Origin: Pocillopora damicornis
Taxonomy: Eukaryota
Length of the DNA: 64,000 bases
Assembly: GCF_003704095.1 (NCBI RefSeq)
Contig: NW_020846737.1
Span: 124,001 to 188,000 of the forward strand
Direction of reading: 5' to 3'
Every line of letters begins with the position of its first letter. Within the stretch, counting starts at the first letter, position 1. A program made the translations under genes and the position numbers. A model generated the notes under the pieces. The model was not told where the DNA came from, made no database searches, and saw nothing but the letters and a program-made list of their open reading frames with translations. Of the stretch, positions 28,901-64,000 are shown piece after piece.

Positions 28901-31900
28901 CTTTTGGGGGGGGGGGCGTTGACGGATCCACATGGTTTTCAACGGGGATTAGTCGTTGGCAACAGAGTTTAAAGGGAAAGATAACATTGACATAAGTCCA
29001 CGATTAGGGATGCAGCCTCAGTTTGAGATATTCCAGACAGAGTCGTCATACATTGTTACAAATCCAATTTCAGGGAAGGAAGAGATATTCAGGGTTAAAA
29101 AGTAGTCTCACACTTAAGAGTGTTCGCTTTTTACTCAGTCTTTTTACCTTAATTTTGAACGATGTTCTGATCAGTTCTGTGTTGTGAAATACGAGTTACA
29201 AGGAAAAATGATTGAAATCTGGGCAACCCGAGACGCCATCGGGAACTCTGTGTACTTATCCATAAAGAAGGTCGTGAGACCATGACCGTGGCTTTATCAA
29301 GCTTGGGAAATTGCATTTTGGTTCCTCAATACAACTCATGCGGTGTTTCATGTTTTCTCTTTTTTGTGATAGGTGGGGCCGAAAACAAACCTCACTCACG
29401 TCGAATGCCTTGCCTCGCACTTGACTACATTTGGAAGCGATTTCTTTGTGCCACCGAACAGATTGGACTTTAACGAGTTTAGTCTGCTTGAACTGTTTCA
29501 GAGCCCTCACGCACTGATTGCAGTGTGTACAATTCTTGGTCTTTACTTTCTGTGTCTAACCGTTGTCATACGTGCCGATAAGAACGACGCATTAAAGGTA
29601 ATCATTGTGTCCTAAGTTATGACAGAGCAATGTAACCATGAGCAAGAATAAGACTTTCTGCCTTGTTTTCTTGATTTCTTGAATCGTTGTTGATTTGGAA
29701 TTGCTACCATAATAACTTTATTTTTTTACAAGAACATAGGATCTTTATATGATTTCAACGCTTACTTTTTGTTTCTCTCTGTCTTCTTATCGAGGGTTGT
29801 GTTAGTTACGAAAAAATCAGACTAAGGAAATTTCTCTACCTTGCACTCTCTTCTAACATGCAGAAAAACAGTTTGAGTGACTTAAGTCCTTAATTTTCAA
29901 TACTAAGTTTAAATGGAAGTCGGATTTAATTTCCTTACCTATCAAAATATCTTATAATGTTATTTTTGCAGGCAGGAGTAACTCCACTCCTTGATAACGA
30001 TTCTCGGGATACGTATTGTTACCAGATTCAAGTTCATACTGGTTTTATTCGCGGGGCTGGCACGAGTGCTGAAGTATCTATAGCTCTCACTGGCGCTTTG
30101 GGCGACAGCGAACCTCGACTTCTGAAAGATCCGAAAAGAAAAACTTTCAAGACAGGTTTGTTATCTCGCTTTGTTTGCCTTTTACAAATTATGGGAAACC
30201 CCTTCCCAGTTGGATTATGAACGAAGCCAGAAAAAAGAAGTTAAAATCAATAAGGAATGCGCGCGCATGATTTTTTACCATCACCACTAGCTATGCTTAT
30301 ACTAAGGGCATATACATATAAGGGTATGGTTTAGAGTGTGTCACAGAAGGGTAAGCTGGTTATACTGGCATATCATGTTACTTTGTCAAGTTACAGCAAA
30401 AAGGTATATTTTAAAAGAAGGGTTTTAAAAAGATAAAAATGGTTCATATACGTCAGTAGCGAGTCAAGTTTGAATTCTTCTCCTCGCTAGGAGCTGTCGA
30501 TGCCTTTCTTTTAATCGTTCCCCAGTCGCTTGGAAACTTGAAACAGATTCGCGTGTGGCACAACAACGGTGGGACCTTTCCATCGTGGAATCTTCTGCGC
30601 ATCATGATCCAAGACATACAAACTGATCAGAGGTGGTGGTTTGTTTGTGACAACTGGCTGGCGGTCGAGGAAGGTGACGGCAAAATTGAAAGGACTCTCA
30701 TCCCTGCGTCTAAGAAGGAGCTGACTAAATTCAACGTCCTTTTCGCGTCTGAAGTAAGGAAGAATCTCACCGATGGCCATATTTGGTTCTCGGTCGTGGC
30801 TCGACCACCACTAAGCACTTTTACTCGAGTTCAACGCCTGACTTGTTGTTTGTCCATCTTACTGTGCACAATGCTCGCAAATGCCATGTTTTACGAAGTA
30901 GGCAAAAACGAGACGACAAAAAATGCCATCAAGATTATGGGCTTTAGTTTCTCGATCCAGTCAGTTTCGATAGGAATCATTAGCAGTTTGGTAGTGTTCC
31001 CAGTGAATCTCGTCATTGCCACAATATTTCGGAAAGCTAGGCCGAAGGAAAGTCGATACGAAGTGAAAACCGGCGCTGACGATACAGATGACTTTGATGT
31101 CGAAAAGGATGGAGAAAAGAAGAACGCTCCTGCAAGCAAAGGACTCCCGCATTGGTTTGTGTACGTAGCATACGGCCTTGCATTTCTATCCGTGACTACT
31201 TCGGGGACGTTTGTGATAATGTATGGAATGCAGTTTGGAGCTGAAAAATCTGTAGAGTGGCTCTCCTCGATGGCTGTTAGCTTCTTGCAAGATGTCTTGT
31301 TAACACAGCCAATCAAAGTCTTCATACTAGCGACACTTTTTGCTCTCCTAATCAAAGACCCGAAGAAGGCCGAAGATGATTCATACGCGGATATCAATGC
31401 TCTTGCAAAGGACGAGGAGTGGTTGCACACGGACATCACAGACCTTGCTCCTGAAATACAGAAGACAATGAAGAAGATAATTAGCGACAAGCCGCCAGAA
31501 GAGGCAAAGCTGGAGATTGCTCGTCAGCTCCGCTTGAAAGAGAAGCAGATGAGCTCCACTATCCAAGAAATTTCCTGGTATATCATCTTCTTGTTGGTTC
31601 TTCTCACCATAAGCTACACCAACAGGGACTTAGATACATCTCGGGTGACCCAATACATGAGGAATACCTTTGAAAGAGCAAGTTACAGTGGAAACCTAAC
31701 TTACGACAAGGTAAGCCCGTGAACTGAGTTACATTCAATGTGACGGTAACCCTCACACGTATTATCTCTTCACTTCAAGGCATACGAGTACGCTCGTGTA
31801 ACAGAGTCTCGAGTTAATTATCAAAGGGGGAGAAAATTAATTTAATCACTATTTCCTTTACAAGGTACACGAGATAAAGCATTACTGGAGATGGTTGAGT

Positions 31901-34881
31901 GAGACATTCATTCCTTCTATAAAGCCTAAAGTTCACTACGATAGTTCGACGCACTATCAAAAGGGCTATCTTGCAGACATTCCAACCGCCTTTCTTTTGG
32001 GTGTGGCGCGTCTAAGGCAGCTGAGAATTAAAAAAGGCAAGTCTTTTTTTTTGTTACTATTCATGGACCAGAGGAACTTCGTGAGAGGGCCACATAAAAT
32101 GATTGTGAATAACATTCAAATAACAAGGAACGTCTTACGTTTTCAACGTGCATCCCATTGTATTACGAGAAGTAGGTGTAAACCAAAGACAACTTTTATC
32201 CCAGTCATTCCAAATGTTGTGCTTGAAATTCGAGTATTTCACCAGTCCCTTAATTGGCTTTGGTATTAATAAAGATTACAATGACTGTCTTTCTTAGATA
32301 CCTGCGTATACAAACGCGTTTCACGCGACATAACCGAGTGCAACGACTTCTACAGCATAAAAGAAGAGGACGATGGCTGGTATTTACCAGGTTGGAAGGC
32401 CACACAAACCGCAGGAGCTCAATCTCAGTCCCTCTCTTCTCACAGGCAAGCTTCTCAGTTAAAAGATCCTTGGATCTATAGAAGTGGAGAGGAGCTGAAG
32501 ACATTCCCATATTGGGGTTACAAGGGGACGTATAGCGGTGGAGGTATGACATGCGCATGTACTCGACAGATCCTTCTTTCTTTATTAACGAGTAGTGGAG
32601 GAACTGTTTGACAAGATAAGTTGAATAAAATCGTGAGATTTTCAGCGAGCGAGAACTACATACTTTAATTCAGAACCATCGAGCGAGGAGTGTGTAAACA
32701 ATGAAATGCATAGACAAATCCACGCAAGACCTTACCATCTGTCACTGAAAGTTACGATCGAAAGAAATGGCATACCTGTGAATTCTTAAGTGCATTGCTT
32801 TTCTTTTAACTCTATCATGATAAGTTCAGTGCCAATTTCTACCACATGAAATTGTTTAATTATTTTTATGATAAGTTCAGTGCCAATTTTTTATCGTAGT
32901 TATCTTGTATTTATTATGAGTTTAGATTATTTTTTAACACTAATTTTTTTAACCAGCGAAATAATCAAGGCGGCTTATTTTAAGGAATCTTGTATTGTGT
33001 TTAAAGCTGTCCTCAAATTGATTGAATTGACTTGTTCAATGTAATTCATTTGGAATTTGTATTTAAGTTAAAGTTTGTCTTATTGTTGCAGGATATGTAC
33101 AGAAATTTCCACAGAATCAGGATGTCAACAAATTGCGGAAGATAATAAGAGATCTTAGCTCACAAAATTGGTTGGACCGCTACACAAGAGCTGTCTTCTC
33201 TGAATTTGCCATTTACAACGCAAACACCAACTTGTTCTGTGTTGTCACTCTTCTGTTTGAACAGCTCCCAACGGGAAGTCTGTCTCCGTATCCCAACATT
33301 GTTACCCTTCGTCTCTTCAGGTACGTCGGAGGCGAAAAGGTCTTCGTGATAACATGCGAGGTTGTGTACTTTTTGTTCACTTTGTTTTTTGTGGTTAGAG
33401 AGGTCAAACTGGTGTTGAAAAAGGGAAGGGTACATCTGAAGAATCCGTGGAGCATTCTGGAAATCCTTGTTACTCTTCTTTCACTCTCTGCAGTGGGACT
33501 GTATTTCGCAAGGTTAAAACTCACCAAAGATGCGTTGAGGGATATGAAAAATGACCGAGCTGACTTCATCAGTTTCCATTACACAGCTTTCTTGGACGAG
33601 TGGCTCAAGTGTGTCATGGGCGTTATCGTATTCCTGTCATTCTTGAAAGTGTTCCGTCTCTTGCGGTTCAACCGGCGCATGTCGATGCTACAGCAAGTCC
33701 TCAAAAGGTCCTTCACCAAATTGATGTCATTCATGGTCATGTTTGCACTCGCGTTTATAGCCTATGCTTTTCTTGCATGCTTGGTGTTTGGGCAAGAAAT
33801 GAAAGCGTTTGGAACATTTTTGAGAAGTTGTACTTCTTTGATGGATACATTACTCGGCAAGTTCACATTAAAGGAATTGTCAACAGCCAATCGTATTCTT
33901 GGACCGATTTTCTTTTATACCTATACACTGACCATGTTGTTTGCTCTTCTGAACATTTTTATTTCCATCATCAACGATGCATTTGCTGAAGTTTGCAGCG
34001 ATGTAGAGAAGCAGTCTAACGATTACGAAATACTCGACTTTATGGTTCATCGGCTGAAGGAGGTATTTGGCAGGACAGATGGCCACGCCGTTCCACCAGT
34101 CTACAGGGAGCGTAAGAGTAAACTGGAGACTAATTTAGATAAGATCGCCGATGATGCAGATAATGCAACTCACTTCATGAGGAACATAGCATTTGAGGAT
34201 ATGAGGGTGACGCGGTGGTTTCAATTGGAAAACTGCACAAAAAAGAAGAAAAATTTGATGCGGCTGCTAATGGAAGTGGATTGGGATTATCACGAGGACG
34301 AACTCTGTGATTCTATACCAGTGTTCGAGAGGTTCCTTGAGAAGTACAGCGAGGAGGAACTGGAGAGAATTCTGCAGCATTACCACCAAAAACGGATGGT
34401 GGAGGACATTGTCTTCGATAAACTCAATGCTACTGGTGAATTCGACGACTCATCCGATGACAGTAACAGTGCTAGCGATGACAGCAACGATAACAATAGC
34501 GGAATCGTCAGCAACGACGAAAAGATGTTTGATGACGAGATGCCTTTGGAGGACGAAGACGGTTGCAGAGGGGAATCGAGGATTACGAAGCCAAAACTCA
34601 ATGCTAGCCTTTACAGCACGGAAAGCCGTCAGCAATCAGGTCTTGGTACCAAATTTGAAACGATTGGAACTCGAAGTCCCTCCCCGTCAATTGTGGATTC
34701 AGAGACAGCAACTCTGCTTGCTGGTCTTGCCACAGTGATGAGTGGCAAAGAGCTTATAAAGGCATTGAAGGATGCGCAGAGGGAAGTAGAAGATCGCTGG
34801 GTTGGTGACCCTGAGTTAGCAACCAGTTTCGAGAAGCCTTTATCCTGTGATGATATCAGTTCACTGACGTTTGACTGCTAA
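4914..34881 (+). CDS. Polycystin-1 family (PKD1-like) 11-TM receptor/channel subunit, about 3951 aa, 31 exons: 4914-4970, 5114-5171, 8096-8221, 8634-8966, 10115-10410, 10578-10731, 11785-12095, 12357-12456, 13016-13171, 13644-13976, 14390-14673, 15025-15178, 15700-16013, 16693-16792, 17284-17937, 18576-19304, 19891-20048, 20647-22349, 23153-23382, 24132-24499, 25357-25533, 26181-26318, 27038-27199, 27823-28083, 28175-28837, 29373-29597, 29972-30155, 30491-31710, 31865-32036, 32298-32543, 33092-34881
   Basis: Intron phases are mutually consistent and the total of 11856 nt is divisible by 3. Motifs: WSC (YLGCYED...CMHLC...YAGL...CLC...C.GAGNLKCGG), PKD (YYWEFSDG, IDYGDG), REJ (NTPPSKGNCTVTPTEG), GPS (C...HLTTF), PLAT (YQIQVHTG...GAGTSAEV; IRVWHNNGG; FVCDNWLAVEEGDG), PC1 signature (DGHIWFSV...FTRVQRLTCC), TOP/channel (RLRQLR, YSGGGY, WLDRYTRAVF, LLRFN, ILGPIFF). 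Exons 1-2 are the least certain. Confidence 0.9.
9107..9723. mobile_element. Non-autonomous DNA transposon with TTAA target-site duplication (Kolobok-like termini)
   Basis: TTAA-GGTGATTCCTC ... GAGGAATCTCC-TTAA (10/11 TIR match); contains a (TA)n tract near 9549-9572. Confidence 0.65.
11247..11438. mobile_element. piggyBac-like MITE, second subfamily, right end truncated
   Basis: TTAACCCTTTAACTCCC start; internal sequence shared with 26345-26546 and, inverted, with 1-66. Confidence 0.7.
14176..14265. other. Assembly gap in polycystin intron 10
   Basis: Run of N. Confidence 1.
16030..16312. repeat. Interspersed repeat with an internal hairpin; uninterrupted counterpart of the split copy at 52345-52543 + 53416-53505 (opposite strand)
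   Basis: Reverse complements of both flanks of the 52544-53415 element align colinearly to this copy. Confidence 0.75.
19400..19493. other. Assembly gap within a (CAGT)n tract in polycystin intron 16
   Basis: Run of N flanked by tcagtcag on both sides. Confidence 1.
19535..19685 (-). repeat. Same hammerhead-like repeat family, copy 2
   Basis: Reverse complement reads gctCTGACGAatggctaacaatctaaacgttag...ttatcaactcagttga...cactgacgcagtaccacagtttcct. Confidence 0.7.
22962..23100. repeat. Short palindromic (hairpin) element
   Basis: gtcagtatctgagcaactgcacacctacccctcccta ... tagggtagggataggtgcgcgactgctcagatcaatgac. Confidence 0.65.
23551..23761. mobile_element. piggyBac-like MITE (TTAA-CCCTTT...AAAGGG-TTAA)
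   Basis: Intact termini and TTAA duplication; internal sequence shared with 42954-43163. Confidence 0.75.
24545..24741. mobile_element. MITE with AGGGACCAGTCA-type termini; relatives at about 14065-14300 (spanning a gap) and a fragment at about 28870-28980
   Basis: aaggaaacagtca ... tgactggtcccta; shared internal ctttatactc and poly-C tracts. Confidence 0.55.
26345..26546. mobile_element. piggyBac-like MITE, second subfamily
   Basis: cattagcaattctc...tgtctgcc...ggagaattt...ggagaaattctgtcttggtcac...gggagttaaaggattaa. Confidence 0.7.
32037..32297 (+). other. Non-canonical GC-AG intron (intron 29 of the polycystin gene)
   Basis: Donor AAG|GCAAGT. Splicing here gives the family motif RLRQLRIKK-DTC...ECNDFYS..EED..Y.PGW in the correct phase. 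Confidence 0.85.
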
Positions 34882-37582: not shown

Positions 37583-40500
37583 ATGTTCAAGACTCGTCGG
37601 AAAAATGCCCTTTTGGTTGCAGTGTTGCTTCTACTGACTCCCAGTTTTGTTGAAGCAACGTTATCTTCGTGTACAAGCAACTCTAACGCAGACATCTCAT
37701 CACCATGTAAGTTTGCACCGGGAGTTCATTCTTATACCTCGTTAACTGTCCGTACTGAAGTCTTCCTGGAGACAACCTCTGGCTCCTCGCAGCATTTCTT
37801 TAATGTCTCTCAGACGTTTGACATTAAAGCAAATGGCAGATTAGTTCTTGATTATAACAAGGAAAGTGGCAGTAATCCTGGTGCGGGTGTGTTGACGAGT
37901 GGAAGCACCGGTAGATCTGGCGGGAGTTACGGAGGCAGAGCTGGCGCTGCCGCTAAAACGCCGCTATCTACATCTCAGGCTGAATCATATGGTAGCGCTT
38001 TTGTCGTCACACAGCCTGGGAGTAATGGTGGCGGCGATCCAAATACACGCGGGAGAGGAGGAGGTTTCCTTAAGATATACGCTCGTAAGCTTGTCGTCGC
38101 TGGAACAGTGCAGGCTAATGGTCAGCGCGCTCAGCAGAATGACGGTGGAGGAAGTGGCGGTGGCATCTCTGTAGACTGCTTCGAAATCGACGGCAACGGA
38201 AGAATGGAAGCTTCTGGAGGGATGGGTAGCGGCGAAGGGGGTGGTGGAGGCGGTGGAAGGATTTCGGTGCAGTTTCAACACGGTTCCTTTTTAGGCCAAG
38301 CAAAGGCGTACGGAGGCAGGACGGGTAAGACAGAGAGTTTCATCTGCTTTATTTTCCGTGATCGAGCTTACGACTTCCGCTTTGACTGCGTTCCCTTTTG
38401 CTCCTTGAGACAAACCTGTGACATTTACATGACAGAAGACAGCAACAGCGACTTCTATTAAAAATCCCCTAAATTTGTTTACTTTCCCACAGATTATTTC
38501 CAAAAGTTTTCGCACATATCAAACCTCAATTTTTATCTGGCCCAACAAAAGTGTGATCGTAATAAACCACACTTGAATGATTCTGAAAGCCAAGCGTCTA
38601 GGCGAGGGAACATTAACCATTAGAGACAACAAACGATGGCTATCGGAGAGCACCCATTTGTCTGATAATTCGTGAAAAAATAGATGTTTTCGTGTTGGCG
38701 ATTACATTTCCGTTGCATTCTCGGATAAAGCCTAGCAATTAGTGGAGAAATCAATATTTGATAAACGGAATATCATTCTTTTTTTCTGCCAATTTAAAGG
38801 AGTCGGATCACTTTCGCATTATAAACAAGGATATCATTAGTATTATAAGCGAGGATATTATTGACCATTTAATATCACTGGTATCATTTAATGATCTTAT
38901 CAATATAAGAGTGAGGTATTTTCTTGTGCAAGGCCTTGTAACAAGTCGATATGTATCTCAGTCTCATTGGCTTAATACGCCGAGCAAAACAATCCTCCTC
39001 TCTTTGATTGCCATATGCCCGACAGCCGGGCACGGTTTTTGAAAGTATCATATGTCTGTTAGGAAATGCCAATCGATCCAAAAACCGTTGGATTTTTTTT
39101 TGTCAATCAGTTGAAGAAATATCTAAACTTTGGCCTCATAAAGCAAAATCGCTTTGATCTCGATTCTTGGAAAATTCACTATAACTAATTAGCTGGCAAC
39201 CGGGCACAGTCTTGATTGGACTAACTGCTCGCGGTGCAAAAATTTTTTCATTCGTCTCTTTTATGCAGGAGTTCCTCTTAAACTAGAACTCAATGCGATG
39301 TGTACATATTTTTAGAATTTCTTTTGGTATAACAACCTCGAGACCACCGAGTGCATTTCATCAACACAAATATGTAGAAGTAATTTCCTCATAATTACAA
39401 TATTCTTATCAACACACAGAATAAGAGCTTGTCATTACAAAAATGTAGCAAAACACTTGAACTTTTTTCTCCCCTTGGGCAAAAATCACAAAAACGATTG
39501 TTGTGTGCAGTCGTGCTCGTAGCATTTAAGTGTTTGTCAAACTATACGTGCGTCCAACATCGCGTCTGATAGCGTCACAGAAACCATTTCCGCTCCCACA
39601 ATAAGGAACTTTGCTTTGTGGCACGTCTTAATTAAACATTAAGTTACGAAAACAGTTTCCCTTTTAATTCTTTTTCACTCACTCTAATTAAATTGATTAT
39701 GACAAGGAATTTTGGATAGATTTCGAAACAATAGCTTAGGAATTTTTTTCCGTTTTAGATCTCGGAAACAGAACAAATTACTCACGACAGGACTGCGAGA
39801 TGAAATGAGGTCTGATACGTGAAAACTCTATCAGCTTGATGGAGTGGTCGGGAAATGCAGTGTCGTATCTATGAATTTTGGCTTAAGATTACACACGATC
39901 GCATGTTATCGAAAGTTTGCGCTGAGTGAAAGCTTGTGATTACAGACTTGAAATGTAACACTTAAATTTTTTACCCTCGGGCAAGATTTTTAAAATTTAC
40001 GGTCGTTGTCGTTGTCGTTGTCGTTGCGTTTTTTCAACCACGGGCTTAACCTATCTAAATTTAATAGGCGTTTTTTCGAATTTCTGTTTCTTTTTTATGA
40101 TACGTGCGTCCGAAATCGCATTATTTCGTGTTTCACTGCGTCAGGGGTTTGATTCTTTTATAACTCATTGACGTAATCGCTGAAATCAACAACAAAGAGG
40201 CCAACAACAACAATAAGAAAACGTCTTAGATTTTCCTTAAGCAACAATAAGAGCAGCAACGAGATGCTTGTTACACGCGCAGCAGATGAAATATCATGTA
40301 AAATTGGGTTTTTTGCTTGCACAGAGCGATAATTAAAGGAAAATCAAGAATGATGTGCTTCAAGGTTGAGACATATTTGCACGTTTAGGTCTTAAATTCA
40401 TGAATGTGCACCAGGTTGTTCTTAGGCTTTTCCTAAATAACCGTGGTTGTCAGCAGAATCTATATTTCGGTCCCGATATTTTGTACACGAATCAGGGTAT

Positions 40501-52500: not shown

Positions 52501-55500
52501 GACATACAGCAACGTGCAATAAATTTATTTTATATAATTAAGCACAAGTCTCTGTAAGAATCAAACATCTTGGGAAATGAAAATTTTCAATCCCCCTTCA
52601 AATTTTGCATGCAGTTAGGCGCTCAGGGGGGAATGCACAAAAATACCCTTTTTAAAGGTTGTAGCACTCTTGTTGCCATGGTAACAACGGCTGCTTGTTC
52701 GAGGCCTGGGGCCTCATTATCATACAAAAACGTCGCAAAAAAAGAGTTAAATGTTTATTTCTCTATCTCAAGCTAAATACAACATTACAAATTGGCACTT
52801 CTACCATACATAGTGAAATCATTCGTCTTCACTTTAATACATTTAATTTTCCCTGGGAGTGAATGTGAACTCACCAATAGATTATTCATCTCGGTACAAT
52901 TTCGGTCATTTTCGTTGTCGGGTAAAACAGCGAAAACGTTTATCTGAATTTCTCCAAAAGTACACCGATTCTGGAACTGAAACTACCCACCAAGCTGGTT
53001 ATAATATTCTTGTTTTTAAATATGTAAAAATCTCTGCGGGCCTGCCTCTACTTTTTATAGGGGCAATTCGCGAAAAAAGCTCAAAATCAGATATTGCATA
53101 ATTTGGCGATGTTTACATCTAAAGTTCTCAATGACAAACGTTTCAGACAAATAAACGTGCGAGGCTTTGAAAGAAATGTTATCTTATGAGCAATATCCCG
53201 AAGAGAAATCTCGCCTCTGGTTGTCATCTTTTCCATGCATGAAAATGAGACCTTAGCCCACGAACAAGCAGCCGTTGTTACCATGGCAACAAGAGTGCTG
53301 CGACCTTAAAAAAGGGGAATTTTTGTGCATCCCCCTTGAGCGCCTAACTGCATGCAAAATTTGAAGGGGGTGGAAAATTTTCATTTCCCAAGATGTTTGA
53401 TTCTTACAGACTTGTTCGTAAGAAGCAAATGTTGTCAATGATGACGTCATTTGTACGTCTATCCTCAAATAGATCAAAAGTAAGGACCAATCAAAATGCG
53501 TGCGTAAGTTAGCTTAATAATGCATGCAGTCTTTACTTCAATTGAAAGACCGTAGAGATATCGCTGTTACTTTAATCTTTATTAAGATAAAAATACAAAG
53601 CTTAACAACCGCACATGCTTTGGAAAGCACTGCTTTTTCTTCGAACGTCTTAATGGTCATGTAGACTTTGTCTTCTCTTTCTTGCAGAGGTTACTTGGGC
53701 ATTGAAGACATGACTATCGCCAAAAGCTGTCGACTCTTCCTGGCTCTAACAGGTTCTACAGAGCTGGCAAACAGTGAGGGAACTTACAGATACAATTCCC
53801 TGACGGTTGCTGATGGGGGAGAGGTGACATCAACATCAGATGTCGGAAACAACTCACTGACACTCGACGTGGATGATATCACAATTCGAGGAGGTGGAGT
53901 GCTCCACATGGTGCGCATGCGTATATTTGTCGGAAACTTCACTGTGGATGATCTGGGTCACTTAAGGGGTGACACGTTTGATAACAGGTTTGTTGAATGG
54001 GGCACTTCCATAGCTTCTGTGTCTTAACATAAGGAGTTTTCGTAGTTCACCTGGATTTTGAGGACGTCGATAATTTATAAGAGGTTATTTGTTGTTTAAA
54101 CTCGATCGTTCCCATAATATCCCTCTACTGTTTCTCACTATAACTTGTTCGGTGAGGTTTTCATGCAGCTTGTGTCAGAATGTATTGTTGAACGACATAC
54201 GTGAGACCGAGAGATTCGTCACAACGAGTTCTCAATGTGTTAAAGATCAGTTAGCTCAACGGCCCTTTTCATTTGAGATTTGGTTACAGAGGCATTAATT
54301 TCACTCAGTAGTGTTGATGATAAATTTATGGTTTTAGTTACTCTGCGGAAACTTCAGTGAACGCTGTTTTCTTTCCGTTTTAGCTGCACTAGCGGTACAG
54401 GTGTCACAAATTCTAATGGTGGGTCTTCAGGTGCAGGGCATGGTGGAACTGGAGGCCTTGGAAGGTATGGAACACGTGTTGGAGTGGCATACGGTCACGT
54501 GTACGAACCTGAACACTTTGGATGTCGAGGCGGAGGCTCGGGGGGACTGGGTGGAGGGATAATTCGTATGTCTGTGAGAGGGACTTTGCAAATTGACGGA
54601 ACAATTAGCTGCAACGGTGATAATGGTCAGCAGTCTCGATCTGGTGGAGGAAGTGGAGGAAGTATATGGATTGACACCAGTCTGATGAAGGGATACGGTA
54701 CAGTACAGGCTAATGGAGGTAGCGGCCATGTGGAAACAAGGTAAGAACCCTTCAGTGTTGCTTAACTGTGGGATGATTTTCTTTGAAGGGGACATAAAAC
54801 ATTGCCCTTTAAACCATCGTTACTTTTTTTAATCCAGTCACTTTGGTTCATAGACCAACCTGCAGTCTAGATTCCTTGGTTTCCTCAAATTATTTTGAAC
54901 TGTGTTACCCAAGATAAGTTCAAATTGATTTGATGAGTGTTCTGTTTTACGACAGTGTTGATACATCTTCTCAAAAAGGAAACAGACATACAAGCAAACA
55001 AATCAATTCCAATTATCATTTTGACCTCAAATTCATTTTCAAAGTGAAAAATTAGCTTAAAACGCTTAGGGCGCATTCTTAAATAACTCACACAGGCTCT
55101 TTTAATTTCTATACGCTGTCAACCTTTATGCTGAAGTTTTAAGGTGAATTTCCAGGGTTATTGACAACTGTTAAAAATGCACTTTGTATCAATATTCAGT
55201 ATAATTATTCTGTTTTTCAGCCATTCACTTCATGGCGGTGGGGGAGCAGGCGGACGGATAGCAGTATACTTCAGAAGTAACAGAACTTACAGTGGGGTTT
55301 TTGAATCCCTGGGAGGAGATTCTACCGGAGACGCTCTCCCTGGAGGAGCTGGCACTGTGTTCCTATATCACCTTATTCATAAACATCGCACTCTTCTGAT
55401 AAGTAATGCCGGGAGAAAGGCGTTACCTACTGAACATTTGGTCATTAAAGACTATTCTGAGCCAGCCTTGATATCGGGAAAAACTTGGCTTCTACCTAGC

Positions 55501-58500
55501 TCTGGAGAACATAATTTTTCGCGCAATCAAAATTATTACTTTGAGGAATTGCAGATTTATGGTGCAGCTCACTTAGCTGTGTTAACCGAGCCTCATAACC
55601 GATCGGCGACGATATATTTCCGAAATATGATCGGTGATCGCACTGGGACCATCCACGTTGGCTATAATCAGACCATGGATTTGATCCGACCGACTATTGA
55701 TTTACCGTTTAATGTTCGTGTATACCGAGGCGGATTTCTAGGTCTTGCTCCAGCGACAGAAGTTCACGGAGTCGAGATTCACGTGGACGGTGTAATTTCG
55801 TACGTAAAGAACCTAACTTTGCATCATGGTGGCCTGTTAGCGTTGAATGAAAACTCACGCACTGGAAACGAGGCGACGGAAAATGATTTCAAGTTCGACT
55901 TTCTGCGTGTACAGTTTGAAGGAGTCATTCAGATGATGTCGTCACCTGTGACACACAACGGGATGAATTTGACCGTACGAGTGCTTCACATTGAGGGTGG
56001 TGGCAAAGTGGAAGGCAGTGATCTACGAATCCTAGCCGAGAACATAAGCATCAATACAGAAGGTCAGCTAACTGTCAGTGGTCGCGGATATAAGCACGAG
56101 GATGGAACCGGCGAGGGTGTTCATGGTAAAATTAACCGGGGACTTGGATCTGGAAGCAGCTCGGGAGCCTCTGGTGGAGGACACGGGGGAACTGGAGGAA
56201 GGGGAAAGCACACGTCTAAAGTAGGATTACCTTACGGAAACATGTACGAACCAATAGAATTTGGAAGTAGCGGGGGAGGAGTAAACAAAAAGCAAGGTGA
56301 GCACAATTTGGTTTCAACTATGAGTACAAAGTCTACGTCATCTTTATGTCTATGGTGATCCGCAGTATTATGCTCACTTCCTGGCACTTAATTTAAACAT
56401 CCCTTAATATCGAGTAAGGGATAGTAAAGAGGGATGTAGGAATGGTCACCTGAATTCTTCAAAATGTGAGAAGCATGAAAGAATGAACTACTCTTGAAGG
56501 TCAGGTGACACCTTTGAGAACCCCGAGAAGGTGTATTGAGAATATCCCATTTTCTAGTGCCAATCCTATTAAGAGTATAGCAACAATAAACTACATTGAT
56601 GAGAAAACGCTCGCTATTGCAAACAAAATACAACTTTTAAATGTGCTGGTTTTTTTAATGGCGACGAGCCATTAATGTTTGAAAATGGAACACCTGTAAT
56701 CCTCATATGATGCTAGACGAAAGAAATAAAACTCAGCTCTCTTTTCTTTTTTCCAAGGTGTTGGAGGTGGAACAGTATTTTTAAACGTCACTAATCTCCT
56801 GGAAATCGACGGGGCCCTTTCTGCCGATGGTGGCGATGCTCTCCCCCAGGGAGGAGGGGGCAGCGGTGGTAGCGTATGGATCTACTGTTATATCATAAAA
56901 GGTTTCGGAAAGATCACTGCTAATGGAGGTTCATCTCCCTCCGATGGTTACGGGAATCACGGGGGCGGTGGAGCAGGTGGACGAGTCGCAGTTTACTTCA
57001 TAAAGAATGACACCTTCTCCTACTTCAGGTAATATGAACTAAATATTGATCCACATGGAATCCAAGGGTGATAAGAGAAGTTACTTTACTATCAACTAAA
57101 CGTTCAAACAAGCTTTTATTGATAAACTGCAAGACTACCGATTGGTAATCAACTAACTGTTTTATCTTCCGTCGACTTATCCTGTTTTTTTTCGTCGGAT
57201 GCGGATACTTTTGCTTAGAAGTCTTAGAAGGCTACAATGTTACTTTAAAATCGCTAAAGCTTCATTCATTAACAGAAACACAGACCACTTGACCATGCGC
57301 TAAAAAGATTGCCAGCGATTTTGTGTCTTATCTGCAGATCTAGGATAGCCTTTCAGTTATGGTTGCAGCTTTTTCGATTTAAAACTACACGTTTTTGAAA
57401 GCAATTTCTTCTTGAAAGATTTGCTATATCCGATAGGACGAGCACTCTTTCTGTGAGCTTATTTTTGTTGATCAAACAGTAGGCCACCTTAGAGTTCTCG
57501 CGATTCAGTGATCTGGTGCCGAAATTACGGCGTGAGAACGAGGCTAAGTGCGAAGTCGCACAAAGAGTAAATGGCTGTGGTGGTGAAAATGAGCGAAAAT
57601 TTCTCGAAATTCATCGTGTGAGAGTGAAAAACTAATTGTGGGAGAGAGGCATTGAGTGAATTGATGGCGGTAGAGGGAAGAAAAAATCACAACTGTTCGA
57701 TTTGTGAAAGAAAGGAGCAGCAATGAAGCTGATCAAGGTAGCCGCTTCTTCAAAGACCCAAAAGCTGTTGGAGGAGAAATAACAAACAAGTGAAGGCAAA
57801 TTTCTAATACCTAACATTTTGAATGCTTGTAACTTATGTGTTCTGCGTTCGCATGCAGCCTTGCCAAGCCTGGCCTCAGTTTCTTTTAAGTCATCATTCA
57901 ACCGTTGCTTTTTTCCCTCACTGATTTGTAGCGAGGGCTTATTGTAATTTGCCAAACGATCCGAACTGAATGAATTGGAAATCGGTTATTTTCGAAATGA
58001 GCTCAAAATTTATAATTAGCAAAATGGGAAGCTGTAATTTGCGAAATGAAAATCTGTTATTTACGAAAGGAGAGTTCGTGCGGAAAACTCCACCGACCAG
58101 AACAATGAATCGGTCAGCCCGTCACTAGCGTGGGTTACAAACTCAACTCAGCATAAAATGTTATTTGTTATTAACAACTTATCACCGAACTAAACTTTTT
58201 TGCCGATTTAATTTTATCTTCGAAGATATTTGTTGTAAAAAAGGGCGACGGCATAATATTACTGCCATGTTTTCCTGCTGAGGAGGATTGCGTGACGCTT
58301 CCAATTCAAGTAAAGTGTCTTGTTACATATTCAATTTATTCATCGTAAACGCTCAAGTGCATATTTCGTAAAGTACGCCCCGAAGATTTCACTTTCGCCT
58401 TTCCCCTAAAAGCTATCATTTGTTAGGTTACTTATTTAATCCAAACTGGATGTGAACTGATCGATTGGTGGCCATAAGTTTTATGCACCTCTTGTTTTGC

Positions 58501-61500
58501 AAATTATAGATTTCCATTTCGCAAACTATAGAATTACAGATTTACAGATTTTGAGTTCATTTCACAAATGACTCATTTCAATTTCGTTTCCTTTCGTTTC
58601 GCAAACTAAAGTAAGCCCTCGTTACGAATCAGCAAGAAATAAAACAACAGTTCAACAGTGGTTCAACAACTGAGGCAAGGCTGCATGTGATCGCTGAGAG
58701 AGAACGAGAGCTCTGGAATGATAGAGGAGTTGTTCGTCCAAGCATTCAAATTTTTTGGTACCGAAATTATCTCACACTTGTTTGTAATTTCTCTTCCAAC
58801 AATTATTTGTGGTCTTTTGCAAAAGAGGCCAACTTGGTCCGCTTCATTGCTACAGCTTTCTCACTTAAATCGAACAATTCTGCCTTTTTCTTTGCTATGC
58901 CTCCATCACTTCACTGAATGCTTCTCTCTCACAAAATAATTTTTCACTCTCCACCTTTGAATTTCGAGAAATTTTTGCGCCACCACAGCCCTTTACTCTT
59001 TGTTCGGATGAAAATGGCGTCGCACTTAGTCACGTTCTTGCGCCGTCATTTTGGTACCAGATCACTGAACCACGAGAACGCGGAAGTGGCGTATTCTGGT
59101 AACAGTAATGGAGATATGTAACCAAACAGCTCACAACTTGAGCTGGAAAAGCCAATCGTAAATTATTTAATAGGAAATTATGGTTCGAGGGTCACTGATT
59201 TCATAACTTTGAAGTCATTAAGAAAGATGGTATTTTTTCTGTCTTTATTCTAGCTACCAGGCACATGGCGGACAGGCTAAGGAAGGCCAGGATAAAGTGG
59301 AGAATGGCGGACCAGGTACTGTCTTCTTGTACCATTTGGTTCACACTCATCGAACACTTCTTATCGACAACAATGGCGGTAAGCCATTGAATAAACATAT
59401 TAATTATGGCCGTCTGGATGAGGAAGGTGGCAAAGCGTGGATTATGCCAGAATCGGGATTCCATCATTTTGCTGCTGAAGAGGACAAATTTCACTTTGAA
59501 GAGTTGCAGATCTACAGCAAGGGCCATTTGGCAATATGGCCACGCGCGGGAAATGATTCAAGAAATGTTTCCATGTTCTTTAAATATATGATCGGTGACA
59601 GGAGCGGCATGATACACATCGGAGATAAGCAAGTTATGGACCTGAAGCGGCCAGAGATCGATCTTCCCTTTAGTGCTCAAGTCTACCTTGGTGGCTTCCT
59701 TGGTCTCGCTCCTTACACACAAGTTCATGGCATTGAGATCATTGTTCGTGGTATTCTCGCATACATTAGGAATATGACCATTCACAATGGTGGTGATCTG
59801 TGGTTGAACCATGGAGGACGAACAGACCACGAAATCATAAACCACTACGACTTTGATTTCATAAGAGTCCAGGATACGGGAACCATTCACTGCGTCACCT
59901 CACCAGTCAACGACCCGGGCGTTCTCTTCACAACTCGTGCAGTCTTCATTGAAGGAGGAGGCCTGATGCGAGGTTCTCGCCTGACATTTGTGACAGAAAA
60001 TATTACTATAGACGATGGTGGGAGGTTAATAGCAGATGGCCTCGGCTACAATACCTCACATGGTTATCAAGGAAACGATATATCTGGTGCACCAATTAAT
60101 CCTGGTCACGGTATTGATGATAATGAAGGAGCCTCTGGCGCTGGTCATGGTGGCAGTGGCGGCCGAGGAAGCCTCACCTATGGCACTCCCAAAACAGGTT
60201 TTGCCTACGGGGATCTGTACGAGCCTTATATGTACGGTAGCGCTGGTGGTAAAGGTAGAGGTGGTACTCGAGGAGGTAACGGTGGTGGAATGCTGTGGAT
60301 GAACGTAACTGGACTGATTGATGTTGATGGGTTGGTCTCCGCAAATGGTGAAGACGCTTCGTCCCTGACTGGAAGTGGAGGTGGTAGCGGTGGAAGCATT
60401 TGGATGTATTGCAAGACGATCAGAGGCTATGGTAGGATAGCTGCTAATGGGGGTGCTGGTTCCAAAGACAGTTCATACCCTGGAGGTGGCGGTGCGGGAG
60501 GAAGGGTTGCCATTTACTTTCAAATAAATGAGACGTCAACTTATTTTGTTTACGAGGCCCGAGGTGGATCAGCTCTTGGATGTGAGGTAGGTAAAGAACA
60601 TCTTTGTAAAGCAGAGGCTGGTGGTCCGGGCACCGTGTTTCTTTATCACATGATTCACACCCATCGCACATTACTCATCCACAATGGTGGACAAAAACCG
60701 TTGGTATCAGCAATAGCAGACTACAACGATTTATCCGAGGATGGTTGTCGGGCTTGGATCTTACCGCAGTCAGCCAATCACGATTTCGCTGGAAGGGGGC
60801 GTGATTTCCACTTTGAAGAGCTTCAGGTGTATGGAGGTGGTCATCTGGCAGTGCTTACTGAACCGGTCGGCGAGAAGGCATCTTTATTCTTCCTTCATAT
60901 GATTGGAGATCGCACTGGTACATTACACGTATCGAAAAATCAAACCATGGACTTACATCGACCCGAAATAGACACTCCATTCAGTGCGCACGTTTATGCT
61001 GGCGGTTATCTTGGGCTTGCCCCATACACCGAAGTTCATGGCGTGACATTATTTATTTCCGGCACCGTAGATCACATACAGAATATGACAATACATCATG
61101 GCGGCGCATTTTGGATGTATCACGGGGGAAACACAGCGAATCAAACGAACAGTTCTTTTGAGTTTGATGCAGTCCGAGTGCAGGATAATGGTGTTATACA
61201 AGCTATAACATCTCCAATCATTCACCCAGGAATCACAATCATAGCCAGGGCGTTTTTTGTTGAGGGAGGCGGGCTTTTCCATGGGACAAGGATGACTGTC
61301 TTAGGGGAAAATATCACTGTCGATGATGGAGGGCTGATCTCCGCAGATGGCGAGGGTTACAACAGGTACGAATATTTCGTGAAGGGAAACGAAAGTAGAA
61401 TACTAATCGCTGATGTGTGGTATGCAGAATTCTTACTTAATTGTTTTACATTACCACAATAACGCGGTTATTTATCGTGGTTGGTTTGCTCAGCTAAATA

Positions 61501-64000
61501 GCATTCAGTAAATCTATGTGGAAAATGGGTTATTAACTCACAATTGTTCGTTCTGGTGTCAAAAGCAGTAGATCACAATTGATTCTGTCAAGTGAAGAGA
61601 AAAGCTTGTTATGTTGCAGTCGATTTGCTTTTAAATTTAGAAAAATTAACGTATTTTACAAAACCACCATCAAGTAAAGGATGACGGAAAATTGTTGTGT
61701 ACATTTATTTCCTAAATGTAACGAGGATAATATCGAGATGTTTACAAATAGGCAAACTAGTTTAAATTATGACTTTTTTCTGCCTTTTGTTCTTAGGACG
61801 CATCCCCAAGGATCAGGCCTCCATGGTGTCATAAACCCAGGTATTGGTTCCTCTCACATCTATGGTTCCTCAGGGGCAGGCTGTGGTGGAAGAGGAGGGA
61901 GAGGCGACCACAGTGCTGTTGTCGGAGCTGCTTATGGGGACCTCTACGAACCTGTCCGATTCGGAAGCTCAGGTGGAGGAGATAAATCGGGAAGAGGTGG
62001 TGGGGTTATTTGGTTTAATGTCACCAATGTCATTCAAATAGATGGAGAGGTTTCTGCAGATGGACGTAAAGGCGACAACTCAGGTAGCGGAGGAGGAAGT
62101 GGAGGAAGTATCTGGATGCATTGTTACCGGATGAAAGGTGTTAAAATTTATTTTTACACTCCTGACATTTGTTTTTTGACTATTTTTGTTAATTACCCTC
62201 TTGAAATAACATACTTTTCATGGTTTCGTTGGATTCTTAATGCACTATTATGTAAACTGTATTGATTGTCATGTTACTTTCATATAAAAAAAGTCCTTTG
62301 ACGAGCCTTCTTCTTCGAATAGGTGCTACCCCTTGTATTGTAGATTTGAAGAAGGCGACTGCGTAGTTTATTCCAGGAATTACCGTAAGACACCTTACGA
62401 AAACATGTCATAAATGAAAAGTTATTTTCTTAAGCAAAAACGAACTCATCTCACTTCTGTCCTAAAGGTACTGGTGCTATTAAGGTCAACGGTGGTGCCG
62501 GTGGTGGGAATTCTGGAGGTGGGGCTGGTGGAAGGATTGCTGTGTACTTCACTGAGAACACCACATACACGGGCTCCTTTCAGTCACGAGGAGGTGCCAA
62601 AGGTGGAGGGTCCAATACCGAGGCTGGCGGACCTGGAACGGCGTTCCTATATCATCTAGTGCATACTCATAGAACACTGCTAGTAGACAACGGAGGTCAA
62701 CATCCCCTCACCAGAAGAATATCGGACTATTCAGATCTCTCGCGAGATGGAGGTCGCGCTTGGATCTTACCTGAGTCAGGTGGCCATGATTTTGCCAATG
62801 GCTCTCACGACTTTCACTTTGAAGAACTGCAGATTTATGGTGGTGCTCATTTGGCGATATTGACTGAACCGGTGAATCGTGCAGCTTCATTGTTCTTTCG
62901 CTACATGATCGGTGACCGAACAGGAATGATTCACATCAGCCAAAACCAAGTCATGAACCTACATCGCCTGTTCTTGGATATTCCTTTCAGCGCATATATT
63001 TATGACGGAGGGTACCTTGGTCTTGCACCCATCTCTGAAATGAATAAGATTATTGTGTACGTGGAAGGAACGCTTGATCACATTCGAAATCTCACCATTT
63101 TAAACGGCGGTGAGCTTCACTGTTACTTGACAGGCTCTACTGGAGAAAGAATTCAGCATCATTACAACTTCAACGAGACCGTCAGAATCATGGCGAGATC
63201 TCAAATCCAAAGCCACAGCCCCAACGCCCATAAAGAAACATTCAGCCTCACAGCTAGGATCCTATTCGTGGAAGGCGGGGCTGCAATTAGCACTTTCAAC
63301 ATGAACATAACAGCTGTCAATCTTACAGTGGACGATGGCGGCTCTATTGATGCAAGCGATGGTGGTTACACAGCAACTAAGGGACCAGGAAGTTTGTTGA
63401 CAAACAACTGGAGACGAAGTGGCGCAGGACATGGTGGAACAGGTGGAAGGGGAAGTTGCGGGGGCTATCACACATGCCGGCTCAAGAAGGGACTACCATA
63501 CGGAAACTTGTATTATCCGAGGGATTTTGGAAGTGGTGGTGATGGTAATGGAGGCAAAGGTGGCGGCATTTTAAGTATTTCTGTGGCGCATACCCTACAG
63601 GTATTTAACTCAATACTTATGTGTTTTATTACATGCTGTGATACTTAAAAACCCATTTTGTATTGAATTTATATTTGTTGTTGATGAATGCAAATGGTGC
63701 GAATTGAATCCACCGAGTATGACTGCTCTGCTTTCACATTTCTCTTCCCCTTTTTCATCTACATTTCCTTAGCTACACATTACTATTCCTTTGTTCTGTT
63801 TGACTATGATACAGCTTGGATTCTTCCTGATATCTTTGCCTTATAAAGGCTTTTCTTGGGAGGCAATGAGCACGATCTGTTTTTTTTTTTGTCGTCAGAA
63901 CTGTATAACAAATGCCACAGTAAGAGGATACCAAAGCTGTGAATAATCTGTCACGACATACAGAGGTTTACATGAACATGCTTTTGGTGTTTTTCAGACG
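37583..64000 (+). CDS. Giant secreted or cell-surface protein of tandem glycine-rich/beta-rich modules with one F5/8 type C domain; over 3588 aa, 3'-incomplete. Exons: 37583-38324, 40770-40960, 41265-41402, 41924-42083, 42830-42871, 43380-43486, 44372-44411, 45411-47290, 47636-47938, 48382-48421, 48641-49300, 50067-50276, 50553-50821, 50912-51114, 51499-51687, 53688-53987, 54384-54740, 55221-56296, 56758-57028, 59254-61365, 61797-62137, 62468-63600, 63998->
   Basis: Signal peptide MFKTRRKNALLVAVLLLLTPSFVEA. The 22 complete exons have canonical splice sites and consistent phases (10764 nt). Recurring module: SGAGHGG.GG.G...YG..Y.P..FGS.GG...GGG.I...V...L.IDG.ISA.G...GGGSGGSIW...G.G.I.ANGG...GGGGAGGRIAVYF...GGPGTVFL...FEELQIYG..HLA...IGDRTG.IH. 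Confidence 0.85.
40770..42083 (+). other. F5/8 type C (discoidin) domain of gene 3, exons 2-4
   Basis: LTASS...KGRLN...GGWMP...EWLEVRL...ITDVATQGR...YTLKY...W...KTFTGNSNTNTVKQN...RAIRFYP...IALRVELYG. Confidence 0.9.
42954..43163. mobile_element. piggyBac-like MITE, same subfamily as 23551-23761, decayed ends
   Basis: Shares ccagaagtgattgacatg...gagaatactcgaacttatc...gaggggagaattaa...agatc.tg. Confidence 0.7.
43615..43917. other. Assembly gap in intron 6 of gene 3
   Basis: Run of N. Confidence 1.
49570..49820. repeat. Same family, two copies fused head-to-head into an imperfect palindrome
   Basis: accgtaaagagtttaaaagctcacgtttcgagc..tagccctt mirrors aagggctaacgctctaaacgtgagctttgaaactctttacggt. 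Confidence 0.75.
52133..52344. mobile_element. piggyBac-like MITE, third variant
   Basis: TTAA-CCCTTTAAC ... AAGGGG-TTAA, about 210 bp. Confidence 0.7.
52544..53415. mobile_element. Non-autonomous element with TIRs of about 190 bp, nested inside another repeat
   Basis: 52544-52736 is the near reverse complement of 53231-53415 (acaagtc..tgtaagaatcaaacatcttgggaaatgaaaattttc...gttgccatggtaacaacggctgcttgttcg). Confidence 0.9.
57478..59095. mobile_element. 1.6-kb foldback element with diverged inverted arms of about 480 bp in intron 19 of gene 3
   Basis: 57478-57960 is the reverse complement of about 58595-59095 (e.g. ttcagtgatctggt, ctaagtgcga, aaatttctcgaaattca, acaaacaagtg, gagggctta). Confidence 0.85.

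Follow-up and report, generated by a model that had tools for sequence, protein, structure and literature searches.

Gene organization

The window analyzed here is a 64,000-nucleotide stretch of the Pocillopora damicornis genome (assembly GCF_003704095.1, contig NW_020846737.1, positions 124,001 to 188,000). From an ATG at position 37583 to the window end, the + strand carries one intron-interrupted gene, modeled as 21 exons (10,695 nt, 3,565 codons, without a stop) with GT-AG at all junctions and the frame kept across every exon junction in the window. The first-pass annotation had given an open length of 3588 aa; the gene is indeed open at the window end, and the count is replaced by that of the model. 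The last donor lies at 63601, and the next exon begins at window-equivalent position about 64,049 on a scaffold of the same species (L001). The features are:

37583..38324, + strand: exon 1, which carries the start codon, a signal peptide (37583-37657) and glycine block 1 as far as the third long strand (open reading frame, translation; donor 38325)
40797..42083, + strand: three discoidin exons, 40797-40960 (5' boundary uncertain by about 12 nt), 41265-41402 and 41924-42083 (Pfam, collinear tblastn, junctions)
43380..43486, + strand: exon 5, closing strand of block 1 with the GGPGTVY... motif (four orthologues aligned; best-scoring phase-0 donor 43487)
43487..44371, + strand: intron containing assembly gap 43615-43917 (phase of flanking exons; orthologue residues accounted for)
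44372..44411, + strand: 40-nt mini-exon, phase 0 to 1 (best splice-signal candidate; fits the 15-residue linker of the orthologues in length and position)
45411..47290, + strand: exon 7, long beta-rich N-terminal region of ~530 aa, then first half of glycine block 2 (open reading frame; collinear with P0149, P0156 and P0160; junctions)
47636..47938, + strand: exon 8, second half of glycine block 2 (orthologue alignment, junctions)
48382..48421, + strand: 40-nt mini-exon, in position and phase as 44372-44411 (top candidate; peptide matches the orthologue linker)
48641..49300, + strand: exon 10, beta-rich segment of module 3 (orthologue alignment, splice junctions)
50067..50821, + strand: exons 11-12 (50067-50276, 50553-50821), glycine block 3 (splice junctions); exon 11 acceptor ambiguous (50066, 50093 or 50102)
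50912..53987, + strand: exons 13-15 (50912-51114, 51499-51687, 53688-53987), beta-rich segment of module 4
54384..56296, + strand: exons 16-17 (54384-54740, 55221-56296), glycine block 4, beta-rich segment of module 5 and start of block 5
56758..57028, + strand: exon 18, middle of glycine block 5
59254..61365, + strand: exon 19, end of block 5, beta-rich segment 6, the whole of glycine block 6 (about 60100-60640) and beta-rich segment 7 (the folded exon)
61797..63600, + strand: exons 20-21 (61797-62137, 62468-63600), glycine block 7, beta-rich segment 8 and start of block 8

Both mini-exons, which the first-pass annotation had not included, are required for continuity. The run of Ns lies wholly inside its intron, whose flanking exons are phase-compatible, and comparison with four orthologues indicated no missing residues in this region (13 residues here, about 15 there). 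The 21-exon model is collinear with proteins of Lytechinus, Ptychodera, Saccoglossus and Patiria, and the exon 1 region is aligned by residues 22-253 of the Ptychodera orthologue P0160. Exons were searched singly and joined only by script, to count codons, stops and motifs; the same-species loci used for comparison begin at window-equivalent 53,010 or later. Introns cut through the glycine blocks, so neighbouring exons must be spliced together, and among the in-window exons only exon 1 has a start with a signal peptide. We conclude from the sequence that this is a single giant gene, of which the window holds roughly the first quarter.

The gene lies 2.7 kb downstream of a polycystin-1-like gene. 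Bacterial contamination or transfer as the source of the window copy was ruled out by this neighbour and by the 20 spliceosomal introns. A 99%-identical copy of exon 19 is present in Tara metagenome samples, which are probably from corals.

Module anatomy and predicted fold

Seven complete glycine blocks and the beginning of an eighth (near 63370) are present in the window. A pair of motifs occurs once per block (38144/38240, 47648/47744, 50597/50693, 54643/55237, 56853/56964, 60377/60485 and 62089/62515), and these positions match the eight places at which blocks had been annotated. The motif GGxGGR[IVM] was observed seven times, against 0.015 expected (1,000 shuffles). Each module, about 415-435 residues long and recurring with a period of 392-433 residues, comprises ~270 residues of narrow beta-solenoid rungs and a ~170-residue glycine block, and modules are 46-53% identical to one another (E 1e-66 to 1e-88). 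Each block contains four long strands about 35 residues apart, which alternate in a set order with conserved Gly/Ala/Ser runs, and the Gly positions are nearly invariant across 45 homologues. The architecture proposed in the first-pass annotation, a giant secreted protein of repeated glycine blocks and beta-rich segments, is supported by these data. Its description of the blocks as polyglycine was overstated, since pure Gly runs are 2-4 residues long, plus one run of 7, within Gly/Ala/Ser stretches of 6-12; the ordered, repeated Gly-rich blocks themselves stand. Nonapeptide repeats of the RTX or PE_PGRS type (GGxGxDxUx) number zero in the 3,565-codon model.

Block 1 is a glycine block as annotated, though not an uninterrupted one: a discoidin (F5/8 type C) domain, split over three exons, is inserted in its last loop. 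When the three exons were searched separately, only the last third of the domain scored in the window, below the Pfam cut-off (exon 41924-42082 against PF00754 positions 84-127, E 3e-5, 24.6 bits, cut-off 28.2). In orthologue P0160, PF00754 passes the cut-off with 38 bits at residues 260-391, directly after block 1.

AlphaFold2 modeled exon 19 (721 residues, 1.65 modules) with a pLDDT of 91.4 and a pTM of 0.89, and the glycine block alone with a pLDDT of 89.8. In the Gly region, pLDDT exceeds 90 where DSSP assigns neither helix nor strand, as would be compatible with the polyglycine-II helices suggested in the first-pass annotation. The glycine block is predicted to be ordered, and the disorder that the first-pass annotation had set against its own proposal was not seen. 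DSSP assigned triplets of 3-5-residue strands about every 19 residues (residues 105-226 and 542-607), so the segment annotated as a beta-solenoid is predicted to be a solenoid of ~19-residue rungs. A rod shape is likewise suggested for the protein by the predicted model.

Foldseek searches of the PDB with exon 19 gave weak best matches to the right-handed beta-helix adhesins Ag43, TibA, Hap and HxuA (Ag43b, E 3.2e-3, probability 0.92, TM 0.16/0.27; TibA, E 5.7e-3), none reaching E 1e-3, and the same search with the block alone gave nothing better than E 0.58. Matches to viral predicted structures were marginal (E 4e-3 or worse, TM up to 0.45) and came from phages and giant viruses, whose matched proteins are uncharacterised or labelled "glycine-rich domain", with no function named. 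These suggest that the glycine block may also be present in phages and giant viruses.

Secretion and the sequence beyond the window

The N-terminus, examined by eye, has basic residues, a hydrophobic run of about 10 residues and V-E-A, as is typical of a signal peptide. The same kind of start was found in the Saccoglossus, Ptychodera and Potamilus orthologues, in agreement with the signal peptide of the first-pass annotation. The 3,565-codon model contains 53 N-x-S/T sequons, two of which (N336-V-T and N411-x-T) are nearly invariant in the family. We infer that the protein is extracellular.

On scaffolds of the same species, the modules continue for at least 22 kb downstream and include a 2,563-residue open reading frame. 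Counting a related coral, there are about 31 blocks in total, i.e. about 23 more modules past the window. In the related coral the modules are followed on the same strand by EGF_TEN/EGF_Teneurin arrays and then by VWD and Laminin_G_3; this EGF/VWD part was seen in that species only, ~75-85 kb downstream of the window end in a composite of the two species, and no EGF_TEN/EGF_Teneurin or VWD domain lies within the window. Models from Pecten, Mya and Amphiura hold modules and EGF arrays in one protein, and in Pecten the EGF arrays and VWD domains are in the same protein model as the modules. The presence of EGF and VWD arrays downstream in the related coral counts in favour of a matrix role. Extending the gene downstream, as had been proposed in search of a transmembrane or GPI anchor, reached these arrays, with no stop codon or membrane anchor in the sequence followed (same species, then related coral). 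Cysteine-bearing inserts after blocks 8, 10 and 12 gave no Pfam match; our impression is that they may be galactose-binding-like domains.

Relatives and conservation

Relatives, all uncharacterised, were found in echinoderms, hemichordates, molluscs, annelids, tunicates, amphioxus, a sea anemone and choanoflagellates, and no member was seen among named vertebrate, arthropod or nematode matches. Similar blocks, attributed to bacteria and protists in the first-pass annotation, were found in both. Pfam searches with seven exon translations gave no match at E 1 or better, PDB sequence (phmmer) and profile searches gave none, literature searches found no paper on this protein family, and no solved structure covering the module was found. 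The earlier label "uncharacterised" thus holds across family, structure, sequence and literature searches, and no full-length match to a functionally characterised protein was found. Of the three outcomes that the first-pass annotation had named as refuting its proposal, none arose.

Between exon 19 and its counterpart in the related coral, pN is 0.116 and pS 0.753, while the introns are unalignable. Saturation at synonymous sites precluded a dN/dS estimate, and the comparison is given as pN and pS. Exon 19 is under strong purifying selection (pN/pS at most 0.16). In a tree, modules cluster by array position and not by species; coral module 8, for example, falls together with a specific Saccoglossus, Patiria and Lytechinus module (support 100). 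As judged from this tree, the module array is old and its modules have been kept individually across phyla.

Public orthologue models are split (Lytechinus LOC129265182 / LOC129265193, Saccoglossus LOC144342564 / LOC100369350, Potamilus CHS0354_004945 / _004948). All 23 named animal models whose ends were read stop inside a module or a repeat array, and in Lytechinus one model ends in the very sequence with which the next begins. As the models are truncated and several look split, tabulated gene numbers and expression values at these loci are probably wrong.

Proposed function

The reading that we favour, and regard as reasonably likely, is that the gene encodes one secreted giant rod protein that acts structurally, as a fibre or scaffold in the extracellular matrix, the surface coat or mucus. 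The N-terminal signal peptide would bring the product into the secretory pathway, and the tandem modules would stack end to end as one rigid extracellular rod, in which the strands of the glycine blocks may form wider rungs of the same solenoid. The discoidin (lectin-type) domain would be looped out of block 1, sugars or other ligands could be bound through lectin-type inserts, and the cysteine-rich C-terminal part possibly cross-links. Given its size, conservation and broad occurrence, the protein is probably an important constituent of extracellular matrix, mucus or surface coat, and it is a matrix or surface-coat function that we infer.

The teneurin-type EGF arrays that follow the modules in related coral, mollusc and echinoderm models would also fit a membrane-anchored adhesion or recognition receptor, with a very long stalk tethered by a C-terminal transmembrane segment, as in teneurins. 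The bacterial relatives are surface proteins, and the C-terminus was not reached in the sequence followed. However, a hydrophobicity scan of orthologue models revealed no plausible transmembrane segment except signal peptides and a few marginal stretches, and arrays of VWD and laminin-G domains typify proteins secreted into matrix and mucus. The signal peptide also looks cleavable, unlike the N-terminal anchor of teneurins, which are type II proteins, and we consider a receptor unlikely. An enzymatic role is much less probable still. The solenoid modules would be arrayed glycan-cleaving or glycan-modifying enzymes, beta-helix lyase/hydrolase-like, as in the G8/PbH1 proteins CEMIP and TMEM2, a reading backed by weak G8 (PF10162) scores in orthologues (25.6-31.6 bits, no single stretch passing) and by PL6 alginate lyases and a beta-1,3-glucanase in the Foldseek lists (E 0.1-1.5). 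The lyase matches have a TM of 0.13 or less and a probability of 0.06 or less, the window exons gave no match to G8 or to an enzyme family, and, to our knowledge, about 31 tandem catalytic modules would be unprecedented.

Most public orthologue annotations are split, as would be expected of several tandem paralogous genes in place of one giant gene; yet the split models stop mid-module, the ends of the Lytechinus models overlap identically, and in the coral the introns cut glycine blocks, the frame is kept at the junctions and only exon 1 has a signal-peptide start, which leaves little probability for separate genes. Least probable of all, in our judgment, is that the solenoid faces, being flat, repetitive and rich in glycine, attach to crystals or minerals (ice, calcium carbonate) in biomineralisation or surface templating. 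Ice-binding proteins do use regular solenoids and polyproline-II bundles, and a springtail antifreeze protein is among the Foldseek matches, but that match is not significant (E 5.4, i.e. noise), the protein has no acidic-rich stretches, and family members are present in choanoflagellates and in many animals that do not calcify.

Beyond the favoured reading of a secreted structural rod, we tentatively raise the possibility that the glycine block is an undescribed unit, a wide rung with a Gly/Ala/Ser-packed side, common to thousands of surface proteins in bacteria and to an extracellular animal protein of ~13,000-15,000 residues whose ~31 modules have been kept since before the cnidarian-bilaterian split. 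If true, this protein would be among the largest animal proteins and a major unrecognised component of the matrix or surface coat of marine invertebrates, in a family that has neither a name nor a Pfam domain and has relatives from choanoflagellates to deuterostomes. With the glycine block defined as a domain, thousands of proteins from bacteria and eukaryotes would gain an annotation, and an ordered glycine-rich solenoid without a solved relative is a good target for structural biology. In corals, a giant lectin-bearing rod would be a candidate for structuring mucus, attaching tissue to the skeleton or binding microbes.

Comparison with known systems

The right-handed beta-helix adhesins Ag43, TibA, Hap and HxuA resemble the coral protein in having ~19-22-residue rungs of three short strands and in being long rigid extracellular rods. 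The structural likeness is low (E 3e-3 or worse, TM 0.28 or less, about 10% identity). These adhesins have no glycine block, while the coral protein has no autotransporter barrel or TPS domain and, unlike autotransporter and two-partner-secretion adhesins, is eukaryotic, intron-bearing and ER-secreted.

The ALK/LTK glycine-rich domain (PF12810), to which the first-pass annotation had compared the blocks, is also extracellular and ordered, with Gly runs beside beta strands. This comparison was not borne out: the seven exon translations gave no PF12810 match at E 1 or better, and no ALK or LTK chain appeared in the PDB sequence and profile searches or among the Foldseek matches for exon 19 or the block. 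ALK Gly runs are longer than the 2-4-residue pure runs of the coral protein, and the coral block sits in a tandem module whereas the ALK/LTK domain is single and paired with a TNF-like domain.

Likeness to VWDE, tenascins and teneurins lies in very large size, in secretion and in the EGF_TEN/EGF_Teneurin, VWD and Laminin_G_3 domains that follow the array in related coral, mollusc and echinoderm models. None of these domains is located in the window, and nothing in VWDE, tenascins or teneurins corresponds to the roughly 31 solenoid modules that make up most of the protein. The database names "TENX-like" and "Tenascin-X" arise because EGF arrays follow the module array. The giant matrix fibres Drosophila Dumpy and SCO-spondin offer an analogy, without a counterpart of the coral solenoid modules.

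Bacterial surface proteins share the glycine block. A total of 5,242 protein clusters gave matches with E 1e-3 or better, mostly to the block alone and 4-10 times in each, and those that bear names are large surface proteins of bacteria. The N-terminal domain of AgmC, a Myxococcus gliding-motility protein (NCBIfam NF047640), shares the set of Gly runs and strands; the match is weak (27.9 bits against a cut-off of 275), aligns only profile positions 244-403, to the glycine block, and was the only one in NCBIfam. In Dalk_2239 of Desulfatibacillum aliphaticivorans (WP_015947007.1, "beta strand repeat-containing / dockerin protein"), the glycine block is 40% identical (E 3e-13) and shares with the coral block the order ...YG.L..P..GSGGG / GG.GGG and strand / GGGSGGSIW and strand / GGGAGGRIA and strand / GG.GTVF. 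Neither Dalk_2239 nor AgmC has a solved structure or a defined mechanism. By BLAST, only the glycine block of Dalk_2239 aligns significantly with the coral protein, and its period is 359 residues, compared with about 430 in the coral. The block is partnered in bacterial proteins by dockerin, CarboxypepD_reg, Big, RHS and caspase-like domains, whereas the animal proteins carry discoidin inserts and conserved N-glycosylation sequons.

Gene model and exon structure

The long + strand open frames running from the ATG at 37583 to the end of the window (G+C ~40%, eukaryotic) are pieces of one interrupted gene. Each adjacent pair of coding pieces was checked for GT-AG junctions that preserve the frame and rebuild the repeated module, and a top-scoring solution was found for every pair. 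Two continuity gaps are each bridged by a 40-nt mini-exon (44372-44411 and 48382-48421, whose positions correspond), and the encoded peptides agree with the linkers of orthologues. The resulting model has 21 exons and 10,695 nt (3,565 codons) with no stops; the estimate in the first-pass annotation was 3,588. Gly makes up 17.3% of the residues, and there are 53 N-x-S/T sequons but just 26 Cys. Exons were joined in scripts for codon, stop and motif counts, and searches and folding were run exon by exon.

Exon 43380-43486, with the best-scoring donor (phase 0), and mini-exon 44372-44411 flank an N gap (43615-43917). The gap is intronic, because no residues are missing: ~15 residues separate the conserved anchors on its two sides in four orthologues, versus 13 in the model. 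The same-species loci compared all begin at window-equivalent 53,010 or later.

Neighboring genes

A polycystin-1-like gene (17268-34881, +) ends 2.7 kb upstream of the giant gene and includes an N gap (19400-19493). Its domains are:

18590-19384, +, WSC domain
20932-22350, +, PKD repeats
30538-31719, +, PLAT, weak match
33133-34878, +, Polycystin_dom and PKD_channel

Further upstream, the same pair of coding pieces occurs in two tandem copies ~5 kb apart (8549-10500 and 13745-14715, +), the second containing an N gap (14176-14265). One piece of the pair has a weak DUF7402 match (E 0.006). The pair may consist of exons from the 5′ part of the polycystin-like gene, or belong to a duplicated gene of its own.

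Signal peptide, glycine blocks and probable discoidin insert

Residues 1-25 look like a signal peptide, and the Saccoglossus, Ptychodera and Potamilus orthologues begin in the same way. The glycine blocks, seven of them complete and an eighth only begun, lie where the first-pass annotation had placed them; the marker motif occurs seven times versus 0.015 expected. Modules are 46-53% identical among themselves, with a period of 392-433 residues. The earlier term "polyglycine" is an overstatement: pure Gly runs span 2-4 residues, within Gly/Ala/Ser stretches of 6-12. Upstream of block 2, exon 45411-47290 encodes a beta-rich region of ~530 residues. Block 1 carries an insert, and the Ptychodera protein is arranged likewise (PF00754 at 260-391):

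40797-42083, +, probable discoidin domain in three exons, inside block 1 between the third strand and the closing GGPGTVY strand (43380-43486)

Exon 19 (59254-61365) has N-x-T sequons at residues 336-338 and 411-413 (window ~60302-60310 and ~60527-60535; exon 19 homologue alignment), on long strands of the glycine block. Both are nearly invariant across the animal family; neither is present in the blocks aligned from Dalk_2239, a bacterial relative.

Predicted fold and structural searches

Exon 19 (721 residues, 1.65 modules) was folded with AlphaFold2 using 44 homologues, giving pLDDT 91.4 and pTM 0.89. The beta-rich part is predicted to form short strands in triplets every ~19 residues, a modeled pattern that is that of a parallel beta-helix. 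In the glycine block, the first ~80 residues are predicted with neither helix nor strand, followed by four long strands of 6-12 residues spaced ~35 residues apart, with a Gly run before all four and a short strand after each of the first three. Folded by itself, the block reached pLDDT 89.8. Its Gly residues vary little or not at all across 45 homologues, which, together with pLDDT >90 in the part lacking helix and strand, argues that the block is ordered and sterically constrained. Disorder, one of the outcomes named beforehand as counting against the proposal in the first-pass annotation, was not predicted. The Gly runs may be polyglycine-II helices, as proposed there.

Neither the Pfam search of seven giant-gene exons nor PDB sequence and profile searches gave a match. 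Foldseek with the whole of exon 19 returned only weak matches to beta-helix adhesins, among them Ag43, TibA, Hap and HxuA, with E no better than 3e-3 and TM at most 0.28. The block alone returned nothing from the PDB (best E 0.58) and marginal matches to uncharacterized glycine-rich proteins of phages and giant viruses among viral predicted structures. ALK and LTK were absent from all PDB sequence, profile and Foldseek results, leaving the ALK analogy drawn earlier unsupported. In NCBIfam, the block weakly matches the AgmC N-terminal model (27.9 bits versus a cut-off of 275). No RTX nonapeptides occur in the 21-exon model.

Distribution of relatives

An exhaustive search yielded 5,242 clusters at E 1e-3 or better (2,666 at 1e-10; 557 at 1e-30). 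Most match only query residues ~215-470, the glycine block, 4-10 times per protein. The named block-only matches are large bacterial proteins, located at the surface or secreted, that also contain dockerin, CarboxypepD_reg, Big, Ig, RHS or caspase-like domains. Dalk_2239 of Desulfatibacillum has its Gly runs and strands in the order seen in the coral block (40% identity), with a block repeat period of 359 residues. Ochromonas and one EukProt transcript provide protist matches, and on Tara metagenome scaffolds, presumably from coral samples, exon 19 recurs at 99% identity.

Full-module relatives with names are all "uncharacterized" or "hypothetical". They belong to echinoderms (Lytechinus, Patiria, Asterias, Diadema, Amphiura), Saccoglossus, Ptychodera, Branchiostoma, Ciona and Owenia, Mya, Mactra, Potamilus, Mytilus, Pecten, Solemya and Nucella, as well as Actinostola and Salpingoeca. 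None of the named matches is from a vertebrate, arthropod or nematode, these being match lists and no proof of loss. Every named animal model whose ends were read (23/23) ends inside a module or repeat array. By eye, the last ~60 residues of Lytechinus pictus LOC129265182 match the first 50 shown of LOC129265193; the two "genes" must thus be adjoining parts of a single gene. Neighboring model pairs of similar kind occur in Saccoglossus, Potamilus and Mya. We conclude that public annotations of the named animal relatives are fragments of larger genes.

Constraint and age of the array

Exon 19 shares 80% protein identity with the orthologous exon of a related coral. In this comparison pN is 0.116, pS is saturated at 0.753 and the flanking intron is wholly unalignable, all of which points to strong purifying selection. 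A tree built on 42 beta-rich segments from seven species sorts them by array position rather than by species. Coral module 8 is placed with a single module from each of Saccoglossus, Patiria and Lytechinus (support 100), and bilaterian modules form several position-specific clades (support 96 or more); placement of the remaining three coral segments is not firm. The array is old, and its modules have escaped homogenization.

Continuation downstream

Same-species scaffolds carry blocks 8-15 and, after them, one uninterrupted frame 2,563 residues long. In the related coral, ~70% identical in this exon, the frame ends within a block at an intron whose position is common to six species; ~ten further blocks and then ~9 kb of teneurin-type EGF arrays follow. 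Modules and EGF arrays occur within one protein in Pecten, Mya and Amphiura models, and the Pecten model terminates, by eye, in the apparent start of a VWD-like stretch. On the same strand 3′ of the coral EGF arrays (L012:12555-20363, a related-coral locus), open frames of 1,015, 812 and 3,626 residues carry VWD, Laminin_G_3 and teneurin-type EGF domains; this stretch belongs either to the tail of the giant gene or to a neighboring VWDE-like gene. The marker count gives ~31 blocks, from which ~13,000 residues would precede the EGF part, both figures being rough composites of two species. As far as the gene was followed, it ran on with no stop, transmembrane segment or GPI signal.

Inserts of ~150 residues, some with several cysteines, come after the closing strands of blocks 8, 10 and 12 on the downstream same-species scaffolds (L001:11040-12254, L004:10600-11107, L004:18006-19200), at the same kind of site as the block 1 discoidin. 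By eye they resemble galactose-binding-type jelly rolls; Pfam gave no match. At another related-coral locus (L009:13011-13493), an in-frame run of ~ten S-I-N-Q tetrapeptides within or next to a module exon is probably an intronic microsatellite.

Interpretation

The observation of a giant gene of glycine blocks and beta-rich segments in the first-pass annotation was right, and the function proposed there, a fibre or adhesin-like rod, is a reasonable guess. In the best reading, the product would leave the cell as a glycosylated, rigid rod or fibre and become part of the extracellular matrix, surface coat or mucus, with inserts of lectin type and perhaps a cysteine-rich tail for cross-linking. 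A beta-helix rises 0.48 nm per rung; at ~15 rungs a module would measure ~7 nm, and thirty modules ~0.2 micrometre.

A membrane-anchored adhesion receptor is less well supported. Less well supported too are an array of several tandem genes in place of one interrupted gene, glycan-acting enzymes within the array, and a mineral- or ice-binding surface. This is a real, large and old family that has gone undescribed, although known kinds account for its fold class and its domain partners.
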